Below the pieces are notes generated by a model. That model searched no databases and was not told the origin of the DNA. It was given only the letters and a program-made list of their open reading frames with translations. A stretch of 64,000 bases of DNA, from positions 62,001 through 126,000 of the forward strand of contig JALMLS010000323.1 of the NCBI GenBank assembly GCA_038496445.1, in the 5' to 3' direction. A program made the position numbers and the translations under genes. The stretch's first letter is position 1. The number at the start of each line of letters is the position of its first letter. The DNA is from Trichosphaerium sp. ATCC 40318 (Eukaryota; Protista; Tubulinea). Shown here piece by piece: positions 1 to 53,140 of this stretch.

Positions 1-717
1 TGAAATAGGAGCACAGTTGAATGTTGAGAAGCCTGACGATTGGTATAAAGTATCAAGTGAAGATGTTGTTAGAAAAGGAGGTGCTGGTCTATTATCAAGG
101 TATAATGGATCGTTATACAAGGCCTTGAAGGATGTATACAAGGAACATCCTTGGAGAAAGTTTCTCTTTTTGTACGTTCCTGTCAAGTTCAGTTTCAAGA
201 AAAAAATAGAATTCTTGATTAATGTTTGATTTTTTGCAGGCGTAAGAAACAAAAGCTTGATGAAGATCTTGCATGTACGCTCTCCACTCATTTTTGAAGA
301 AAAAGTTTTGAACATGAGCTCATTCATCTAAATTATGTTTTTTTTAGCTCGTATATCTGGTAGTAGCCGAAGAGGTCCACGTGGACGTGTTACAGAAAAT
401 GAAAGATTTTACGAAATTATTGGTATTTCATCAAGTGCTTCTGTTGCTCAAATTAGATCTGCATACAAGAAGTTAGCTAAGGAATGGCATCCAGGTATGT
501 ATTAAACTATTGTGTTTGAAGAAACAAAAAGATTCAATGTCTGACTTTGAGATGGCTTTTAAGTCATGCCATTTTCATTGTTATTTACTTGTTATGTTTA
601 GACAACTTTTCTGGTAATGCAACTGCAATAGAAGACGCAGAAAAACGTTTCAAAGAAATATCAGAAGCGTATTCAATACTAATTGCTATGCGTGACAAAA
701 AAGCTAAGAAAGAGTGA
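1..717 (+). CDS. 5'-partial, spliced: ~72-aa 'DWY' repeat protein with C-terminal J-domain (DnaJ)
   Basis: Exon 1 reads ...KPDDWYKVSSEDVVRKGGAGLLSRYNGSLYKALKDVYKEHPW. Downstream exons give ERFYEIIGISSSASVAQIRSAYKKLAKEWHP|DNFSGNATAIEDAEKRFKEISEAYSIL, with HPD split by the GT-AG intron 495-601. TGA at 715-717. Confidence 0.85.
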
Positions 718-4304: not shown

Positions 4305-6704
4305 TTATTCTACAAGTCTGGCAAAATGGTTATGAGGCGCCATTATACCTTTATGAAGTTGTTCTACAATAAAACTTAGTCATTGTCCTTATTTAAACAA
4401 ACTATTAATGCGCACCTGTTGGCCCTGAATTCGGTGGAACATCGATTAAAGGAGCGACTCCATTTCCATTTATATTGACTTCCGGCTGGTAAAACATGAT
4501 AGTTGCAGCCAAAGAATCAACATCACCACGCCACCAATAAGGTATTGGTGCCAAATGTATCCCTTCAAAAAAAAAAGAAAAAGTCAGAAAAGAATCACAT
4601 CAAACAAACAGTGAAAGAAAACGCTTTGCGTACCTAATTTTTTGCACACGTTGACTTTTTCTATGTCTTGTGCCTCTAAGATAGATGTACACAGTGCGTA
4701 TGGTAGTACATTATGGTAATGTTGCTCTCCTATTGTGTTGGAGTTAGTTACTATCGTTTTTCTTTGTTTTAAGGGCAGATTCCAGCTAAAGAGCCAAGGC
4801 CTCTGCGGTTCCAAATATTATGTTGCCCAAATGTCTTGATAGCCATTCAGTAGAACTACGAGTTTAATCGTTGTACTATTGCAAGCGCAAACAACCCTTT
4901 TAAGAAAACTGTTTCCTCAGAATTTGCACTAGAAAATAAAAAACAAACAGAAAAAAATTGTGGTTGAAAAATAGTCAAATTTCTGCAGATCCACGCAATA
5001 ACCTTTTTTTTGAATAAACCTCAAATGGTACAGCTTTCGTCACAAGACTTGGCATATTGAAGTTTTCGTTTCTAGTACCTTGGTATTCAATTGCAAGGTC
5101 GAATTTTGGGATAAAAATATCCAACGATATCTTTGCCTGTGTATCAGCTGTTTTGCCAATGATGTGCTCTTCGTTTATTTTAATATCTGGGAAAATAATC
5201 TTAAGACATAGAAGAAGCTGCCTTGAGATAAAGTAAGTACAAAGAAACTCAAGAAGTAAACCTGAGTGTACCGCTGAGATGATTTTTTGGAGCTTCTGGA
5301 AAACCGTCTCCAATCCCATCTGAAACTTGGATACAGGCCTTGAAGTGCATGTCGATAATAGCGCCTTACAGATAGGCCACCAAGATTTTCAATCTGTTTC
5401 GCTGAAATGCGGTACCTACGAAAAGTGTCAAAACTTGAAAACACGTGCAGTAAGTAGTACCATGAGTTAGGGTCTGTGATATTATGTTTGCTAGCTACTC
5501 TAGATAGGAATTGTAATTGGTTGGTTTCATCTGTCCAGAAGCCTCTTTCCACCCTTTGGGATAATGGGAAGTGAAGCTTGGCTTCGGGATACAAAGTGTT
5601 GAAAATTTTTGGCATTGTACTATATCTAAACTGAGTAAGCACGTGTTATGTTTTAACTATGTATTCGTCCATACTTGCTTAGGAGTCTACCCCCACTTGC
5701 TTTGTGGAATGTTTTTGTATCAACAAGTGAGAATTGATCAAGTGTCTTTATGTCTAACGTTTTAGCTATAACTTCTACTTTGGCGATACGATTCTTATTG
5801 GTGTCATAAAACCTTTGAGGCATTATTCTAATCTTATTAAAATCACTACAGACTCAATGACGATTGTGTACTTGAATTTTGATGCATCCCATGGATACTC
5901 AGGATATACGTTCTTCAGTGCTGCTAAAAGACTATTCTCGTACCTACAAGAAGAATTAGTTAAAGAAGAACTAGCAAACTGTTTCAAACCACGTGCTTTT
6001 TCATCATGCCATTCATTTTGAATCTGTTATAAACATCACTGCCCTTAACTTTATACCAGTCTTCAGGTCGTTCTATACCAAGTTGTTGAGCAACATAGTC
6101 AAACTTTTCGCGTTGATTAGTGACATCCATCCAATGACCATTTGGCACAGTGCTACAGTGTTGGTTTAATACAATTACGTTGAAGCTTGTCAGTACGCAC
6201 GAGAATTGCTGCATCTTCCATTCATGGCGTGGGAATAGCTTAAGCAGTAGTTCAGCTACAGAATCGTTGTACCTGAGTTTGGTTAGAACATAGTGCTTGC
6301 AATGCTATATCACCTGTGTAGGAAGCCCTGACCGTCGTTTTGGAGAATATCTTCTGTTTTGACGAAATACCAATCGTCCAAGTGAGTTATATTCAGCTTA
6401 TTAGCTAAGTCATCGATAAATCGCCTGTGGTTCGAGTATTTGTCCCAGTGACCAATAGATCTACGCTTGTAAAAGAGTTTTCGCTTGACACTTGATTTCC
6501 GTTTTAAAACGTGTATTCTTGTGCAATAATATCGATTGTGTAGCGGTTTTACGCCTTTTAAGTGTCAACAGACAAATTTTCAACAACCAAAACCGTTAAT
6601 GGTGACTAGTTGCCGTAACGCTCCTATTATAACGTACTCGAGAGCGATTGTGCGTATCCAGGATTTGTAGCCACACTACAACCCCACAGATTCTTGATGC
6701 GCAT
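4305..6704 (-). CDS. 'DWY' tandem-repeat protein with C-terminal PD-(D/E)XK/RAP-like endonuclease domain; putative organelle transit peptide
   Basis: Basic N-terminus MRIKNLW...HNRYYCT. Repeats such as GHWMDVTNQREKFDYVAQQLGIERPEDWYKV. C-terminus SKKSSQR..LDIFIPKFDLAIEYQGEQHY..QDIEKVNVCKKLGIHLAPIPYWWRGDVDSLAATI. The last exon is uncertain. Confidence 0.8.
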
Positions 6705-28638: not shown

Positions 28639-28709
28639 GGGACAATGGTGTAACGGAAGCACATGGCATTGAAGGTGCTGCAGTTCAGGTTCGATTCCTG
28701 GTTGTCCTA
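28639..28709 (+). tRNA. tRNA with GAA anticodon (nominal tRNA-Phe, atypical body), copy 1
   Basis: Acceptor GGGACAA/TTGTCCT, D-stem GTGT/GCAC, anticodon arm TGGCA-TTGAAGG-TGCTG, T-arm TCAGG-TTCGATT-CCTGG, A73. Confidence 0.85.
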
Positions 28710-28717
28710 CATACCTT

Positions 28718-28804
28718 GCAGAGGTGCTCGAATTGGTTAATGAGGTTGTGTTCAAGACACAATGTGATGAAAATCACGTGTGGGTTCGAGTCCCACTCTC
28801 TGCA
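28718..28804 (+). tRNA. tRNA-Leu(CAA)
   Basis: GCAGAGG/TCTCTGC, anticodon arm TTGTG-TTCAAGA-CACAA, long variable arm, GTGGG-TTCGAGT-CCCAC. Confidence 0.93.
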
Positions 28805-28811
28805 TTTTTTT
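28805..28811 (+). terminator. RNA Pol III oligo-T terminator
   Basis: T7 immediately after the tRNA-Leu discriminator base; no T-run between the two tRNAs. Confidence 0.75.
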
Positions 28812-39822: not shown

Positions 39823-42023
39823 TCACACGATATATGGGTATTCAAACCAAACACCGCACTTGGCCCGCTCCATAGGCAATCTGCCTTTCAGCCATTCAAC
39901 CCGAGGAGATGAGAAAAAGTTGTTCTTCTGCGCAGATGTAAAGCAATTGAAGAACAACACCTTCAAAAAAAAAAAAATCAATATGTAAATAAAAGTTGTT
40001 GGTATTAATGCCAAAACAAATACGTACATGTTTCATCCATGAAAACTGGCCTGTGTTCTTCAATAATTCATTTCGGAGAAACAATAGGCCCTACCCTTAC
40101 ATGTTGTAAAAACTTTTCGGAAGCAAGTCTCTTGAAGGTTTAGTTCATCGTAGAATCTGTAACACAAGAAGAGATTGCTCAAAACAGTCATTGAAGTGAT
40201 TCCCTTAAAAATCGATTTGACGGTTGGATCTTTTCGGGTTTTTTACGTTTTTTGAGGTATACATACTTCAAGGGCTGCTATGAGTGTCCTATTAAAATAT
40301 TTGTAAGCGAAAAAACGGAAAACAAAAACTCCTTGGCAACCATAAACAGTAACGGAAAATAATGTGTCACATTGTTTTTTTTCTGAAGGGTTTTTTGCTC
40401 TCACTCGTACCTCTGCTTTGCTCTTTTCTTTTTAGTTACTATTCTACGTTCATTCCATTGAATATTAGGATACATACGAGATAACGCATTAACGATATTT
40501 TGGGCGTAATAGAGTAAGCCCGATCCACCCATTAAGGCAATCTCATGGTTTGAAACGCGGTACCTAAAGTCAGTTACTATAGGCCAATAAAATTAATTGC
40601 TTTAATTAAAGTACCAGTCATAGGGAGCCACAATATTTAGCCTTTGTGAAACTTTTGAAAGAAATCTTACAACGTTCATCTGGTTCTTCCAATATCCTGA
40701 TTTAGTGTACCTAATAATCGAAAGTAAGAAAATAAATTATTGTACAAAATAACCCAAAAAATGTAAAAAAAAAAGATCCGGAATGTCAAAACAACAAACT
40801 ACAACGTCACCTCTGCTCCCACTTGTATTCAGGATAAAGCGTTTCTAGTGCCCTTATGATATTACCATCATAACTACAACACGTCAAACAAAAAAAGCGT
40901 TTTCAAGTCAACTTGACTTCTGTGACACTTACTTTGTTAGGAGCAAACCCCACCCACCTGCTTTAACAATTTGGTTTTGAGTAACAAATTCCCAGTCTTG
41001 CCAATTTATTATCTCTAGGTCCTTAGCCATTGCTTCAAACTTTTGTTTTTGATTTCCCAAATCATCCCAATACTCTTTAGAGCAACGACTAATACAAAGC
41101 TCCATTAGCAAAGCGTAATCTAACCAGCAACAAAAACACAACAAAATTCGAGCCTAAGCGTAGAATGAAGCGACAAAGACCACAAGAGAACAAAAGCTTA
41201 CAGAAGTAATGATTATATACATCGGAAAAAAGTTTGCACAGCAAGTCACGTACTTGAACTTCCATATACAAAATTGAAACGTTGGGTATAACGTTGACAA
41301 GCACTTAACAATCGAACCACCATACCTATCATCCGTTAAAATGTTAAATCACAAAATAAAAAAACCAAACAGAAATCGGAAAATCTGTTTTTCCTTCCTT
41401 CGTTATTCTTTTAATCACGTGCCTGGATTTGAGAATAAAGATTGCGTGTTTAGATGTTATACCACCAAATGATACAGTGTACCAATCACTCAGAGTTTTC
41501 AAGTTGAGGGTTTCGCTAAGGCTATCAAAAACTTCACGTTGTGCTTCAACACTGTTCCAAAAATGTGCTGGAACTGTCCTATAAGCCATTTGTTAAAGAA
41601 GTAACTGTTGTGACATGCTTGTCGTGGGTATCTTGTAGCAAGGCGGTCGTACAAGAATTTTTTATCGTTCCAAGCGAATTTAGGGTACAACGTCTTTAAC
41701 GCTTTTCTGAAACCACTTCCATAGCTTTTACGGATTAACAAGCGCGTTTGATGCGTTTTTAAGAGAGAATGTAATAATAAATACGTACTATGCTATATTC
41801 GACGTATTGGTACTTGATACATCACTGGTGGTTACTTTATACCAATCGTCAATTGTTTTTAGTCCAAGATTACGTGCAATGGTGTCAAATCGCATAGTTT
41901 TCTTTCTTGTGCACTCTAGGGGTTTCTGCAAGCTTGAAATACGTTATTACAAAGTAAATGTATAAAAAGGTACCTAGTAGACGCCCTAGCATATTTCGCA
42001 GCGCTAACGAACTTATTTCGCAT
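39823..42023 (-). CDS. 'DWY' tandem-repeat protein, no recognisable nuclease motif; 3' end uncertain
   Basis: MRNKFVSAAKYARAST; repeats LGLKTIDDWYKV, VPAHFWNSVEAQREVFDSL..LSDWY, YWDDLGNQKQKFE..WQDW, WYRVS..GGSGLL; then KKRAKQR. Confidence 0.7.
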
Positions 42024-45776: not shown

Positions 45777-46502
45777 CTAGCATCCAGAACAATTACAATC
45801 TGGTGGGCAAGTAATAAGACTATTCTCAACAAAGCAAGAGGTGTTACCAAATCCACAAATACTGTCACTGAGTTTACCAGACAAACGTGTGTCTGTTAAG
45901 TCCAAAAAGTGCAATGAAGGTGATTCAAGTACCCACTTTGGTAGCTCTCCATCCAAGTGGTTATTACATATTTCAAGCGAGTACAATGAGTACAAATTAT
46001 TCCAACTATCAGGTATATGACCATAGAAGTTATTGTAATCAAGGTTGATTTCTTCAAGAGACCATAACTCAGAGATAACTTCTGGTAAAGGTTGCTTTCC
46101 AAAATCATTTCTTTTCAGCCTTAGTATTCTAAGGCTCTCAAGGCCCTTGAGGAATGTGACATTACCAGACAGGGAATTGTCATCAAGCCACAGCTCAGTG
46201 ATCATACTCAACCTACCAAAACTCTCTGGAATAGTGCCGACCAGGTTGTTGTGGCGTAAATTGATTTGCAATCCACTTTTTAGCATGGAACAGCCAATAC
46301 CATGCCAAGTGCATGGGTTATCATTACTCTTGTCATTCCATCCTTTGTTTGTCCTCCAAAAGGGTCCTCCAGTTGCATCGTAGAATTGCCGCAAGATTCT
46401 TACTACTTCGTCATGTGAAGGGACTTCTCGGGTTTGTGTGGGTGTTACGATGTGTATTAGTGTGCACACGATAAATAACGAGCAAACAACTGATTTGAGC
46501 AT
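45777..46502 (-). CDS. Secreted leucine-rich-repeat protein (LRRNT + ~5 plant-type LRRs), intronless
   Basis: Signal peptide; FYDATGGPFW..GW....PCTWHGIGC; LxxLxLxxNxLxGxIP repeats; Cys-rich C-terminus. Confidence 0.9.
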   Translation of the reverse strand: MLKSVVCSLFIVCTLIHIVTPTQTREVPSHDEVVRILRQFYDATGGPFWRTNKGWNDKSNDNPCTWHGIGCSMLKSGLQINLRHNNLVGTIPESFGRLSMITELWLDDNSLSGNVTFLKGLESLRILRLKRNDFGKQPLPEVISELWSLEEINLDYNNFYGHIPDSWNNLYSLYSLEICNNHLDGELPKWVLESPSLHFLDLTDTRLSGKLSDSICGFGNTSCFVENSLITCPPDCNCSGC

Positions 46503-46906
46503 CTTAGGAGGTTCCACAAGCTGTAAGTGTACGATTGCTATACTCTGTTTCGCACTGAATACAAGATGTATTGATTGTGGGACACAAAACCAACAGTTGC
46601 TTATGTGTAAAAAAAAAACTTAAATCGAAAATGAATTGGAGTTTTCATGTCTCCTAGATGCCCTTGACCAAAAACTTATGAATGCAAATCCTTTGGCCAT
46701 TACCCTCCTCAGAGTTGCCTTGAAAGGTACAAATATGGCCAAGAATAAAATGAGAAGGTTGAAGTGAACGAGACTAATACAGACTTGTTTAATCAAAATT
46801 ACGGTATTTAATGCGCCTAAAGCAGGTGTAGGCTTTGCTATGGGATATGGTTAGTTTTTATCGGTTTTAACAACAAGAATACAAAGTCACTCGCTTTGCG
46901 CGTAAA

Positions 46907-49900
46907 ATGCGTGCTTTGGCTAAGAGTGTAGCTGGTAAAGCCACACAGCGCTCAAAACAACCACAGGCAAAGCGAAAATTTTCTACAGGTACAAAAGCGC
47001 AATGAAGCGAACCTTCTACGCCCGTTTAAGTTATATATAACCTCACTCGCGCTTTTTACTAGCTCCAAAACCAAAATACCACTGGGATGATATTAGAACT
47101 CAAAGGCACTACTTTGAGAACCACATGGCTCCTGTACTTAATATAACCACACCAAATGATTGGTATAACGTCACAATTGAAAAAGCCAACGAAGCCGGCG
47201 CCAGAGGCATACTTAGGCGGTGAGTAACGCTAATACGCACGATAACTTCCGGTTAAAAACGCTTTGACAGTTCATACTCTATTGTACTCACCTGCTATCT
47301 TAAGGTATGGAGGATCATTGATTAGAGCGTTGGTAGCTATTTACCCGCATAAAAAATGGGATTTATGGCAGTTCAAGTAAGAATGAAACAGTAAACTTAC
47401 CGGATCCAACGGCTATTCACTTAGGTGTGTGCCCATGCATTATTGGGATAAAATAGAGCATCAACAACAAATCTTTGAAAACGCTGCTCGTTTTCTTCAA
47501 GTGATGGCACGTGCAGACAATTTTTTTGCTGAAGAACAAGTCTTTTGGTAATCATGAATATTAATGTGGTTTTACCTAGATTATGGAAGATTGGTATGCG
47601 ATTACAAAGATAGATCTCATCGAGAATGGCTGTGTAAGCGTCATACTTAACAAGTACGAAGGAGCGTTACCGATATGTATCCCTTACACAAGTTCAGATA
47701 CAATGGCTCAGTGTCACGTGCATTAAAGTCTGTTTTTCCTCAAATTAAATGGAAAAAAAAAAGATTCATGTACTGCCTTTTATTCTCGTGTTAGATGTAC
47801 CGGTCACTTATTTGTTTTCGTTTGTCTAGATATGTACCTTTGAATATAAATGAAAAATATAAAAGAGATATAGATGAATTAAACATTGTTGCAGAGAAAT
47901 TGGATATCAAAGTGTTAGATGACTGGCATGAAGTTAATGTCAAAGATGTTTTAGATATTGGCGGTGGTATAACTATTGCAAAGTGAGTACCATGGTTTTC
48001 TCATTATTACGCTTGGTGTTAACGAAATCAAGGCATGGAAGAAGCTTGCAAGCTGCCCTTCGACAGTTATTCCCAATGCACAATTGGCCTCCACTACACG
48101 AGTTAGTACTTGACTTTTTCTTTGAATACTTTTGTCTTATGTTGTTGTGCTTTAGGCTTAGCGAATGGGGTCACTGGAACGATGAAAATAACCAAAGATC
48201 TAGGTTAGAACGTATGGCATCAACTCACGGTATCAAGACATTAGATGATTGGTATGGTGCGCCTTACTCTGAGTTTATCAAGAGCGGTCTTGGGACTATA
48301 ATGAAGATGTACTTTGTTCTGGTTTTTACCTTTCTTGGTTCTTACCCTTTGTGTTTTTAGATACAGCTTTTCTGCTACAAGAATGTTAGCTTCATTATAT
48401 CCTGAATATCAATGGAAAGTATGGCTGTTCAAGTATGTGACAACGACATTATTGTAAATAGGTTTTATTAATAGCTATCATTAGGACTTCTGTTGAAGGT
48501 CATAAGCGTATTGAACTTGATAGGATTGGCCAAGAGCTTAATGTTAAAGTTCTTTGGGATTGGTATAATATACGCGGCGAGGATGTTCAGGCACATGGCG
48601 GTAATTACGTAACACAAAAGTACTACAAAATACCAATTCAGAACCTCATTTCATGTTTGTTCTTTCTCACAATTAGTTGATTTGTTTTCGTAGATTTAAC
48701 GGTTCCTTGTATGCAACTCTTGCTGATTCTTATCCTCACTTTGCTTGGAAACCATGGAAGTTCGTGTAAGTACTTGTCACATGTTGTTTCTTTTCCTAAT
48801 AGTTAAAACGATTTAGAACTGCTCCAATGAACTACTGGGCGGATACAAAGAATAAAAAGGCCTATACAAATTATGTTGCTAAGCGTTTAAATGTCAAGAC
48901 TTTAGAAGAATGGGATAGTATAAAAGCTAAAAAATTCAGACAAGAAGGAGGCGCTGGCATGCTGAGAGTGTACAGTCTTTCTGAACCAATTTTTTCGAAA
49001 AAAAAAAACTAAGACTACACTTCTAGGCATAACGATTCTCTTGGTTCTGCTCTTAAAGATCTCTACCCCGATTTTGCTTTCATTTTCAAGTACTAGTATT
49101 CCGTCGTTGCCTTTTTTTTCTTATGTGTGCACAGAGACAAGAAGGTAGTCCGCAAACCAGGTCACTGGAACAAGGAGAGGAATCAAATCACTTTTCTAAA
49201 ATCAGCAGCAAAATCTCTTAAAATTGATGATCCAGATAGCTGGTACAGCGACCTCATGCTTCGGTTAAAACACCTCACTTAGTTACTCACTTTATGTAAG
49301 GTATCGGATATCAGAGGCTCAGTTAGCAAGTGCTGGTGGTTCAGGTTTTTCGCAACACTTGCTTAATGCTTTGAGGCTACTTTATCCAAACTACTCTTGG
49401 GATCAGAACAACTTTGTAAACTCAAGTAAAAAGTCTAAGCAACGGTAAGTAGTTTACAGCATAATTCGAGGATGGCTTTAAAATAGAAACACTTTATTTG
49501 AGTTAAAGTATTGACAAGAAAGTTTAGGTGGATGTTGTCTTGTATAAAAAAACTATTTCCGTTTCACAGAATCGAAGAAGAACACTTTTTGGGATCACGT
49601 GAAGATTTTACAACTGCTTGCAGTGTTGACGTGTTTATACCTTCTTTTAATTTGGCGATTGAATATCAAGGTAAGCAGCAAGCACATCAAGTTGATTGTG
49701 CACATAACTAACTTTTGAATCAAAAAAGGTGAACATCATTACAGCGATATTTTCAAGTTTTCCATGCCGACTATGGTATTCAAAGCACGTGATATGGAAA
49801 AAATAAGTTTATGTAAAAAAGCAGGTTCGTATCTAAGCTAAATATTTGTTTTCGAGAAGACTGTATCAACATCTTTCTGTATTGAAACAAACTTTTTTTG

Positions 49901-50101
49901 TAACTATTCAACAAACGCTCATCTTGAAAAGGTATTACACTGATTGAGATTCCGTTTTGGTGGCGAGGTGATATTGAAACGCTTGCCGCTACTATTAGGC
50001 ATAGACTTCCTACCGTTGGATTGGATATGTACAAGGATGTTAAACCATTACTGCCTAAGGAATCATCAGAAGAAATACAGAATCTTCCAACAAGTACCTA
50101 A
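46907..50101 (+). CDS. 'DWY' tandem-repeat protein (7 repeats) with C-terminal PD-(D/E)XK/RAP-like endonuclease; putative mitochondrial transit peptide
   Basis: MRALAKSVAGKATQRSKQPQAKRKFST; seven ~72-aa repeats; SKKSKQR..VDVFIPSFNLAIEYQGEHHY..RDMEKISLCKKAGITLIEIPFWWRGDIETLAATI. Confidence 0.85.
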
Positions 50102-51269
50102 ACCCTATTTTTCTGTGTTCCGCAGCTTTTTTAACTCCTTTGGTTTAGCGTTTTCAGCTCATATTATGACGCCCACTAGTTCAGCCAAATTAGGGGTTAT
50201 GAGTGCTTAGGTTGTGTTCAGAAAGGAGGATTTAAAATAAAATAAAATGTACAGTAAAGAAAAAGAGGATTAACTTGCGATTGGCATGGAACGCTAGTAA
50301 CAGCATTGCTAGTGCTCCTTCAAAAGAGAAACGGCATAAGGGATCTCTGAGACAAACCAAATGTTTAAAAAGGATGAGCTAAGGAGTCTGATAAAACATG
50401 TTTCAATCTCTCGTATTTTTGTGATTTGGCAAACAGCATACATCTTCAAGTGTGGCTAGAACTGGTGGTGTCACTACTGCTCACTTTATATCATGTTACA
50501 AATTAGGAAGTACATGAGCCCCTTTGCACTGTAGATATAATGGTATGTTAGACAAATACAGAAGAGAAACTCTCTAATACATCATCCGCTAGATAGTTTG
50601 TCACCTCTCTATTTTAGCGTCATATTGCGACAATACGAATTCATACTTGTTACACAATTTAGCTTGTGGTATTTGCGCGGAAATAGTTTGGAATGTGAAC
50701 AGGCTCATTGTCTTTTTTTCGGTTTTATTCTCACCAAAAAGAAATAACCGCAAGTGGTTTACTACCCTTGCACTCTCATTATTTGGTATATGTGGTTGTG
50801 TTGACACGTTATTATTTGCCCGCTATTGAAGAATACAGCGAATTCGTCATGTTATCGTAGCTTTTATTTTACTATTTTTGTAGTGCATCACATGTGATAC
50901 CGGACAATAAGTTTATGGCCTCCCGCGTATGTGATTTCATGCACGATTGTTGGTATATGTTACAACAGCTTGTAGGTTTTGCAGCTGTGAGCATCTGGTA
51001 TTGCTACTCTCTGGAAACCGCCGTCACTTCACTAAGGGTCACTAGCGCTAGAAAAGTTGCTAAGTTCTTGTAAAGCACATGTAAACAATAAGATACATCG
51101 CCATAACTTTGACTAGCGCTAGTTGCACTATTCCACGGTTTTATCAACAGCCCAAGAAATGTCACGTGATTCTTTATTTTGCTAAAAAACGCGAATTTTC
51201 CAACTAGCGCTGAAAAACAAGGAAAGTCATAAAATACATACAAGACCCAAAGCAACAACAGGTCCTGAA

Positions 51270-52756: not shown

Positions 52757-52827
52757 GGGACAATGGTGTAACGGAAGCACATGGCATTGAAGGTGCTGCA
52801 GTTCAGGTTCGATTCCTGGTTGTCCCA
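52757..52827 (+). tRNA. tRNA with GAA anticodon (nominal tRNA-Phe, atypical body), copy 2
   Basis: Identical to copy 1 except C72 (G1-C72). Confidence 0.85.
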
Positions 52828-52835
52828 CATACGTT

Positions 52836-52923
52836 GCAGAGGTGCTCGAATTGGTTAATGAGGCTGCGTTAAGGACGCAGTGTGGTGTGTAACCACGTGT
52901 GGGTTCGAGTCCCACTCTCTGCA
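52836..52923 (+). tRNA. tRNA-Leu(AAG)
   Basis: Same acceptor, D and T arms as 28718-28804. Anticodon arm CTGCG-TTAAGGA-CGCAG. Followed by a T7 terminator at 52924-52930. Confidence 0.93.
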
Positions 52924-53140
52924 TTTTTTTGATTATGACAGAAAAAGCAAGTTTATTGACATTTGAACAAAATAACACAAGCGCGTTGGGAAGAACGATT
53001 TAAAAAGTTCGCAGTTTAACACATAAAATAGACGTTGAATCTTGGTAGCAACCATAAATTTGAAGCATTTTTAAACTGTTGGCAATACATATACAGAAGC
53101 AATAGAGTTTTATTATATTACAGGCCGACTAGGTCTATTC

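Follow-up and report, generated by a model that had tools for sequence, protein, structure and literature searches.

A C-terminal endonuclease domain of the Vsr type that follows a modular N-terminal region is described in the phage homing endonuclease I-Bth0305I, for which an Asp that binds Mg and is essential, a His that acts as general base and another Asp nearby are described, together with one polar and one additional conserved acidic residue (PMC3239194). DUF2726, a PD-(D/E)XK family, has been grouped with Vsr and DUF559 (PMC3424549). Here, a gene of comparable plan was analysed in a 64,000 nucleotide stretch of DNA from Trichosphaerium sp. ATCC 40318 (assembly GCA_038496445.1, contig JALMLS010000323.1, positions 62,001 to 126,000 of the forward strand), referred to below as the window. 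The gene lies on the plus strand and encodes a presequence-like N-terminus, seven tandem repeats and a predicted Vsr-like nuclease domain at the C-terminus. It is tentatively read as specifying a mitochondrion-targeted DNA-nicking enzyme, the nuclease of which would be positioned by the array of repeat domains.

The likeness to I-Bth0305I and the other EDxHD phage homing endonucleases (3r3p) lies in the C-terminal Vsr-type domain, the bipartite plan and the modular N-terminal region, and extends to a conserved Asp, acidic, polar, His and Asp residue in the same order. I-Bth0305I has NUMOD/helix-turn-helix or zinc modules at its N-terminus whereas the window protein has seven 75-aa DUF4046-like domains, and the E-x-Q-G-x-x-H spacing of the window family is one residue shorter than in I-Bth0305I (N208 to H213, PMC3239194). 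Unlike the I-Bth0305I gene, the window gene is nuclear, comprises 19-20 exons, encodes a presequence-like N-terminus and resides in no intron or intein. Vsr itself, the very-short-patch repair endonuclease (1cw0, 1vsr), is similar in fold, and its catalytic Asp and His would match the Asp and His columns of the window family. The window family, however, is without the Vsr zinc site and has no Pfam Vsr match, a long N-terminal array has been added, and no sign of mismatch recognition was found in it. DUF2726 is the sole Pfam family matched by most of the nuclease domains examined (33/44) but is bacterial and uncharacterised, and no tabulated score is at the Pfam gathering level. DUF4046 consists mainly of Bacillota proteins of about 260 aa with roughly three repeats and a function-less label, in contrast to the seven repeats and nuclease of the window protein; unlike the window family, DUF4046 clusters in the ESM Atlas have no nuclease family among their common Pfam families.

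Organellar RNA factors that contain a RAP domain (FASTK, OPR-RAP and HPR-RAP) resemble the window family in having a presequence, an array, a C-terminal Vsr/DUF559-like domain and many paralogues. Their repeats are helical hairpins of 37-38 aa as opposed to five-helix domains of 75 aa, relatives of the window protein carry DNA ligase, and the Pfam RAP profile matched just one of 44 nuclease domains. PPR, OPR and HPR units more generally are 35-38 aa long and consist of two antiparallel helices, in contrast to the 75-76 aa and five helices of the window repeat. TALE nucleases, the engineered TALE-FokI fusions, likewise combine a tandem array and a nuclease in one chain, but the window units are twice as long and globular, and no hypervariable di-residue or other code position was identified in them.

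The window has a G+C content of about 37% and short introns, which point to a eukaryotic character. No long open reading frame (ORF) was found over 46907-50101, where a chain of short coding pieces is spread across the three plus frames. Joining of these frames at canonical GT..AG sites resulted in a model of 19 exons and 18 introns of 44-107 nt each, the 2064 nt of which encode 687 aa and are free of internal stops. Three short contigs from a public run labelled as probable RNA cover the gene and support two of the 19 junctions, those of intron 1 and the last intron; the remaining junctions are based on frame, GT-AG ends and homology. The repeat exons were also recovered by a six-frame scan of the window. 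The original prediction had placed the coding span at 46907-50101, the end of which probably needs correction. The TAA at 50099-50101 is probably not the stop, because one RNA contig, with a depth of 2.4 and a shorter flank of 71 nt, joins 50093 to 50149. This deletes the TAA, and the ORF then runs on to a stop at 50209-50211, meaning that the stop at 50101 is probably spliced out and that the coding end is probably 50211. The main features of the transcript are as follows.

46907-50211, plus strand: whole coding span, 19 exons to 50093 and the RNA-supported last exon 50149-50211
46907-46987, plus strand: N-terminal segment of 27 aa, MRALAKSVAGKATQRSKQPQAKRKFST, presequence-like, no D or E, net charge +8
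46989-47062, plus strand: intron 1, 74 nt, GT..AG, RNA-library contig joint 46986>47061 (cut +2)
50094-50148, plus strand: probable last intron, 55 nt, GT..AG, contig joint 50093>50149

Two differences between the RNA-library contigs and the window were observed, an in-frame 3-nt deletion at 46952 in the presequence-like region and a G>T change at 48261, both of which are probably strain or allele variation.

The basic, acid-free N-terminus that had been noted earlier was borne out by these residue counts. An acid-free stretch of at least 15 aa with at least 4 basic residues was found within the first 30 residues of 54/147 relatives, or about a third, and many of these proteins have MLxxR-type starts. 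Based on these features the window protein may be located in mitochondria, while a KRK-type nuclear signal is a possible alternative reading of the basic N-terminus. The full protein has a pI of 9.4 and a net charge of +25, and the median pI of the family is 9.0.

In order to define the array, a 76-position hidden Markov model (HMM) of the repeat with the consensus FKKVPKGFWKDKENQREFLDWLAKELGIKKLEDWYKVTKSDIKENGGSGLLKKYGGSLSKALKSLYPEHEWKPWKF was built from the proteins of other organisms, with no window sequence included. Seven repeats were found in the spliced window protein, each of them significant at E values of 2.5e-14 to 7.4e-24.

46988-47374, plus strand: repeat 1, aa 28-103, two exons with an intra-repeat intron at 47220-47304, HMM E 7.4e-24
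47375-47767, plus strand: repeat 2, aa 104-177, three exons, HMM E 4.8e-23
47831-48099, plus strand: repeat 3, aa 179-251, the most divergent, without the first Trp, HMM E 2.5e-14
48160-48430, plus strand: repeat 4, aa 254-326, HMM E 1.3e-23
48489-48763, plus strand: repeat 5, aa 329-395, N-terminally shortened, HMM E 4.1e-20
48764-49135, plus strand: repeat 6, aa 396-468, HMM E 7.1e-22
49148-49415, plus strand: repeat 7, aa 473-542, HMM E 3.2e-18

The seven repeats are real and far beyond chance. Together with the KKSxQR-type linker and the C-terminal motifs, they had been read from the sequence in the original prediction and are confirmed by the splicing model and by independent HMMs. Eleven consecutive exons within 47305-49444 are each divisible by three in length (72, 153, 69, 153, 72, 135, 72, 153, 63, 108 and 144 nt) and are flanked by 12 phase-2 introns. 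In repeats 1-6 one intron follows GLLxK, at repeat position 52/53, and one is found at the repeat boundary. Repeat 7 has an intron between W and Y of D-W-Y, as does the last repeat of a paralogue located at 6704-4305 in the window. A skipped or duplicated exon pair in 47305-49444 would preserve the frame and would offer a ready route to altered repeat number.

The fold of the repeat, a unit of 75-76 aa, was investigated with a single-repeat model that included 121 homologous repeats (pLDDT 88.8, pTM 0.72). The model is a compact five-helix domain, with helices of 14, 6, 7, 6 and 8 residues, that folds confidently alone. The likening to a natural TALEN in the original prediction is not supported, the single repeat being modelled as a globular domain and not as a helical-hairpin solenoid unit. 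The statement that the repeat is none of PPR, OPR or HPR was upheld: there was no Pfam match to these profiles in 55 full-length relatives or in the 121 single repeats, and no Pfam family at all was matched at threshold by the repeat in the window exons, the full-length relatives or the 121 single repeats. Fold searches of the PDB with the repeat returned no meaningful match (best VIA Z 3.6, to TetR and Slx4 CCD; Foldseek E >7), and nothing significant emerged when PDB sequences were searched with profiles of either the repeat or the nuclease. A SAM-like or (HhH)2 identity, prompted by the GGxG loop and by weak SAM_TNK, Myb_Rap1 and CH matches, was considered and dropped, as those PDB fold searches returned no SAM domain and no solved HhH domain; the lone HhH-named match to the repeat was a weak Atlas cluster (TM 0.39). 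Across 614 family repeats, column statistics revealed a conserved aromatic core (W9, W34, Y35, W71 and F76), a conserved polar N-Q-R where helix A begins and a conserved G-G loop. The most variable positions (2, 12, 39, 40, 43, 52, 53 and 59) are mostly at helix starts and in loops.

A distant resemblance to Firmicute DUF4046 repeats, raised in the original prediction, holds by predicted structure and by language-model features and is below threshold by Pfam HMM. When the single repeat was superposed on models of the ESM Atlas, unnamed Tubulinea and Nucleocytoviricota clusters were matched at TM 0.83 and a Bacillota DUF4046 cluster at TM 0.76 (76 aa, 2.3 A), both sides of this comparison being predicted models, while the 'homing endonuclease associated repeat' PF18780 was matched more weakly (TM 0.50). 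Three consecutive repeats from the full model superposed on a three-repeat Bacillota DUF4046 protein over 212 aa at 4.3 A. When clusters near a piece comprising three repeats were ranked by language-model features, DUF4046 was dominant, with 35 of the 100 nearest named Atlas clusters. The best score to Pfam DUF4046 (PF13255) was 15.1 bits (E 0.0067) against a gathering threshold of 22.8, with an alignment over nearly the whole domain. Two of the 121 single repeats and 2/55 proteins matched DUF4046, all below the gathering threshold, and it was the sole Pfam family matched by more than one single repeat. Judging from the models, the repeat is a distant relative of DUF4046 by fold and tandem plan and not a Pfam member.

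The C-terminal domain of the window protein matched an HMM of the family nuclease at 117 bits (E 3e-38). The motifs DVFIPSFNLAIEYQGEHHY, RDMEK and GITLIEIPFWW are present and are arranged as follows.

49425-50038, plus strand: Vsr-like PD-(D/E)XK nuclease, aa 546-667, exons 49528-49670, 49729-49824 and 49932-50093
49428-49528, plus strand: KKSKQR linker (SSKKSKQR), split by intron 49445-49527; across the family, the nuclease module has a near-invariant K..Q.. start
49628-49642, plus strand: DVFIP, with D586 in the family-invariant Asp column
49658-49742, plus strand: IEYQG and EHHY, spanning intron 49671-49728, with E597, Q599 and H603; Glu and His are family-invariant
49788-49802, plus strand: RDMEK, with D621 as the invariant second Asp and K624 as a near-invariant Lys
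49949-49963, plus strand: IPFWW, Pro and first Trp invariant and second Trp near-invariant in the family

In an alignment of 44 C-terminal domains, with the consensus ELDVxIPSLxLAFEYQGEQHY...RDxEK...C...GITLIxIPYWWD, the columns D, E, G, H, D, P and W are invariant. All of these are retained in the window protein as D586, E597, G600, H603, D621, P639 and W641, and an EEE is found about 20 residues before the conserved Asp. The active site is likely retained because D...E-x-Q-G-x-x-H...D keeps the residue order described for I-Bth0305I. We infer from this alignment that the invariant residues are catalytic. D586 would be the Mg-binding Asp (Vsr D51, I-Bth0305I D196), and the D, H and D residues would be equivalent to Vsr D51, H69 and D97 by motif order and spacing.

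The structure of the domain was assessed with an AlphaFold2 model (mean pLDDT 85.3) of the closest full-length relative, P0015, a protein of 690 aa and the same architecture that is 29% identical to the window protein over the full length. As the original prediction had proposed, the C-terminus models as a restriction-endonuclease-like fold of the Vsr/DUF559/RAP type. The following solved structures were matched by residues 535-651 of P0015.

3hrl: NGO0050 / DUF559, Z 9.5
1cw0: Vsr bound to DNA, Z 9.3 over 126 residues
3r3p: I-Bth0305I catalytic domain, Z 9.3, Foldseek probability 1.0
9g6k_Li: T. gondii mitoribosomal protein (RAP), Z 8.6
9gek: human FASTKD4 (RAP), Z 8.4

By these models the nuclease has a PD-(D/E)XK fold of the Vsr/DUF559/I-Bth0305I type. 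Among 55 relatives, 54 matched phrog_559 (best E 1.7e-27), 51 matched phrog_9084 'homing endonuclease' and 36 matched phrog_7140 'intron encoded nuclease', and the PHROGs that match the domain are annotated as HNH, homing or intron-encoded endonucleases. The Pfam DUF2726 (PF10881) matches of the 44 domains were counted at E<=1, with a best E of 4.9e-6, or 5.3e-7 in the search with full-length relatives, and a viral relative scored 19.4 at a Pfam cut-off of 24.7. Pfam searches with the separate exons of the window gave no match. The RAP (PF08373) profile was matched by none of the window exons and by the one nuclease domain mentioned above at E 0.03. In sequence comparisons the nuclease is thus nearer to phage homing endonucleases and DUF2726 than to RAP, and it is homologous to homing-type endonucleases of phages and giant viruses.

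A profile of the window's first-half repeat exons was searched against 1.84 billion cluster representatives. Matches numbered 5742 at E<=1e-3, of which 542 were at E<=1e-30, and a single protein had as many as 21 matched stretches. By this search the window gene belongs to a very large family, whose representatives number in the thousands, and is not a rare oddity. The number of repeats in relatives is 2 to 25, and the same C-terminal nuclease domain was found in 95 of the 154 family proteins examined, which are the best matches (approximately 60%). Named sources among the best matches are transcriptomes of Cavostelium apophysatum (Amoebozoa), Heterolobosea sp. BB2 and an MMETSP marine protist, and further sources are one metagenome-assembled genome labelled 'bacterium' and many metagenome contigs. 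Cavostelium apophysatum accounts for at least 11 distinct clusters among 30 looked up. A 1-Mb contig with one family match is taken to be eukaryotic because split PTPA and CYFIP genes adjoin. The names given at the source for the best matches looked up are all 'hypothetical protein' or bare transcript or ORF labels. In three relatives (P0062, P0117 and P0147) the nuclease is followed by an ATP-dependent DNA ligase domain (PF01068) that scores above the Pfam cut-off, and in a fourth (P0048) by a weak match to it.

The same nuclease was found in at least 309 viral stretches, and the ORFs examined carry DUF4379, DUF723 or CapR zinc modules in front of it, while the eukaryotic repeat was present in none of the 87 viral nuclease ORFs examined. 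Matches of the nuclease in BFVD were phage homing endonucleases and giant-virus 'restriction endonucleases'. Because viral relatives carry other modular N-termini, the recurring plan appears to be a modular N-terminus with a C-terminal Vsr-like nuclease, as in I-Bth0305I. Individual IMG/VR loci illustrate the variety of these viral genes: DUF4379 treble-clef, DUF723 and CapR modules precede the nuclease at L004, L049 and L077, and two or three nuclease genes lie close together on viral contigs L028, L038, L053, L069, L073 and L078.

The window holds four genes of the family, namely the main gene and the following three.

4305-6704, minus strand: paralogue with four repeats and the same nuclease, nuclease exons 48-49% identical to those of the main gene
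40446-41892, minus strand (limits approximate): paralogue with four repeats split into exons as in the main gene
1-717, plus strand: 3' part of a paralogue cut by the window edge, one intron-less repeat followed by a J domain

The main gene and the paralogue at 6704-4305 have intron positions in common after KQR, between EYQG and E, and between KKxG and I. The paralogue at 41892-40446 ends in ...KKKRAKQR followed by GTATGAG, at the site of the main gene's KQR intron, and no nuclease exons were detectable downstream of it; the gene has either been truncated or is a paralogue that has no nuclease. In the 1-717 gene the J domain is split by an intron, the HPD motif being formed across the splice, and the two exons match DnaJ at E 2.4e-9 and 4.8e-4. 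Because J-domain and effector-less paralogues exist, the array is suggested to be a general targeting module.

The reading that we favour, tentatively and a little short of calling it probable, is that of a mitochondrion-targeted DNA-nicking enzyme with a nuclease positioned by the domain array. The nucleus-encoded protein would probably be imported into mitochondria, where a chain of seven independently folding five-helix DUF4046-like domains would position the nuclease on DNA. The C-terminal Vsr-type endonuclease would be Mg-dependent and His-activated and, with a single active site per chain, would nick one strand. Site or structure preference would be set by the seven-domain array, with variable surface positions of the repeats presumed to determine the target, and ligase-bearing relatives would reseal the nick. 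The array is thereby expected to bind nucleic acid, and DNA is favoured as the substrate because of the fold, the nearest sequence relatives, the modular N-terminus and the DNA ligase partners. Several points weigh against this reading. Nucleic-acid binding and cleavage by the window protein are predictions, and the structures were predicted for a 29%-identical proxy and not for the window protein. Presequence likeness was judged by eye and from simple residue counts. The net charge per repeat in the family averages just +1, three of the seven window repeats are neutral or acidic, and the repeat is without a significant match to any solved DNA-binding domain (best Z 3.6). The J-domain and nuclease-less paralogues show that the array can serve other effectors. 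Finally, RAP domains of mitoribosomal and FASTK proteins fit the nuclease fold almost equally well (Z 8.4-8.6), and by analogy a presequence, a long array, a C-terminal PD-(D/E)XK-like domain and many paralogues together make up the plan of organellar RNA factors.

Were RNA the substrate, the array would bind specific mitochondrial transcripts and the C-terminus, like that of FASTK, OPR-RAP and HPR-RAP proteins, would cleave RNA in the manner of RAP or serve to bind it, making the protein an organellar RNA-processing or stabilising factor. We regard this as rather unlikely but as a serious rival. The C-terminal domain can be aligned with RAP domains of T. gondii mitoribosomal proteins, of human FASTKD4 and of a mitoribosomal protein from Tetrahymena, a Tubulinea neighbour cluster in the ESM Atlas is auto-named 'RAP domain-containing protein (Fragment)', and presequence-like N-termini and many paralogues per genome (four in the window, many in Cavostelium) are in line with such a role. 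The weak full-length Foldseek matches are to the same T. gondii proteins at E 3.6e-3 but have TM values of 0.12-0.20 and a root mean square deviation of >20 A. The single RAP match at E 0.03 moreover contrasts with 33/44 for DUF2726 and 54/55 for phage endonuclease PHROGs, DNA ligase is fused to relatives, and the repeat is a five-helix globular domain akin to bacterial DUF4046 as opposed to a helical hairpin. The analogy to RAP, FASTK and OPR proteins drawn in the original prediction is therefore weaker than that to DNA enzymes, given the phage endonuclease and DUF2726 relatives and the ligase fusions. It is quite unlikely that the protein, whether domesticated or selfish to this day, descends from free-standing homing endonucleases that move among amoeboid protists, giant viruses and phages, with paralogues that cut genomic or viral DNA at specific sites to effect gene drive or antiviral defence and not for organelle maintenance. 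Such a descent would agree with the homology between the nuclease and homing or intron-encoded endonucleases of phages as well as 'restriction endonuclease' proteins of giant viruses, with Nucleocytoviricota members in the Atlas clusters that hold the repeat, with a repeat number of 2 to 25 among relatives and with the clustering of paralogues in the window. On the other hand, spliceosomal introns at shared positions mean that the paralogues behave as ordinary, old nuclear genes, N-termini are presequence-like, the eukaryotic repeat was absent from all 87 viral ORFs, and neither an intron or intein context nor terminal repeats were seen.

A further reading, in which the array would be a scaffold for proteins or ligands and play no nucleic-acid role and the nuclease-like domain would be a non-catalytic interaction module, is highly doubtful. 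The same array is joined to a J domain (1-717, DnaJ E 2.4e-9) or to nothing, no known DNA- or RNA-binding fold was matched in structure by the repeat, and the charge of each repeat is modest, all of which a scaffold would accommodate; yet the catalytic-type residues are invariant across 44 divergent relatives, conservation extends to the polar N-Q-R that opens helix A and to the G-G loop, and whole proteins are basic with relatives fused to DNA ligase. That the DUF4046-like domains are a new modular nucleic-acid reader in which each 75-aa unit contacts a fixed number of bases is considered improbable. Base contacts would then be made via the start of helix C and the neighbouring surface (HMM positions 39, 40, 43, 52 and 53), and arrays of 2-25 units would spell the target site for a nuclease, nuclease-ligase or J-domain effector. 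A programmable one-repeat-per-base code is possible but not supported by the present results. In a narrower version of the modular reader, the family may supply the nuclease of 5' tRNA editing in mitochondria, a process known in amoebozoans and heteroloboseans.

Other features of the window were also recorded. Just upstream of the main gene, at 45777-46517 on the minus strand, is a single-exon ORF of 246 aa that encodes a secreted-looking leucine-rich-repeat protein with a Cys-rich C-terminus. ARAGORN identified two copies of a tRNA-Phe(GAA) - tRNA-Leu pair, 6 nt apart within each pair, on the plus strand at 28639-28805 and 52757-52924, with the Leu anticodon CAA in one pair and AAG in the other.

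The plan described here recurs in thousands of proteins from amoebozoans, heteroloboseans and marine protists as well as some giant viruses. The eukaryotic repeat is not represented by a Pfam model. A full-text literature search found no paper on DUF4046 (PF13255), and literature searches that also took in HNH_repeat and Vsr with helical repeats in mitochondria returned no description of the window family. An expandable array of small domains together with a nicking-type nuclease that keeps its active-site residues, and sometimes with a DNA ligase, may constitute an undescribed cut-and-seal system of DNA maintenance that is possibly mitochondrial. Should sequence indeed be read by the array, nucleic-acid targeting would gain a new protein scaffold, a natural, evolvable counterpart of TALE or PPR. 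Even with non-specific binding, DUF4046 and DUF2726 would acquire a functional context through the family, which would also link phage homing endonucleases to the expansion of host genes in eukaryotes.

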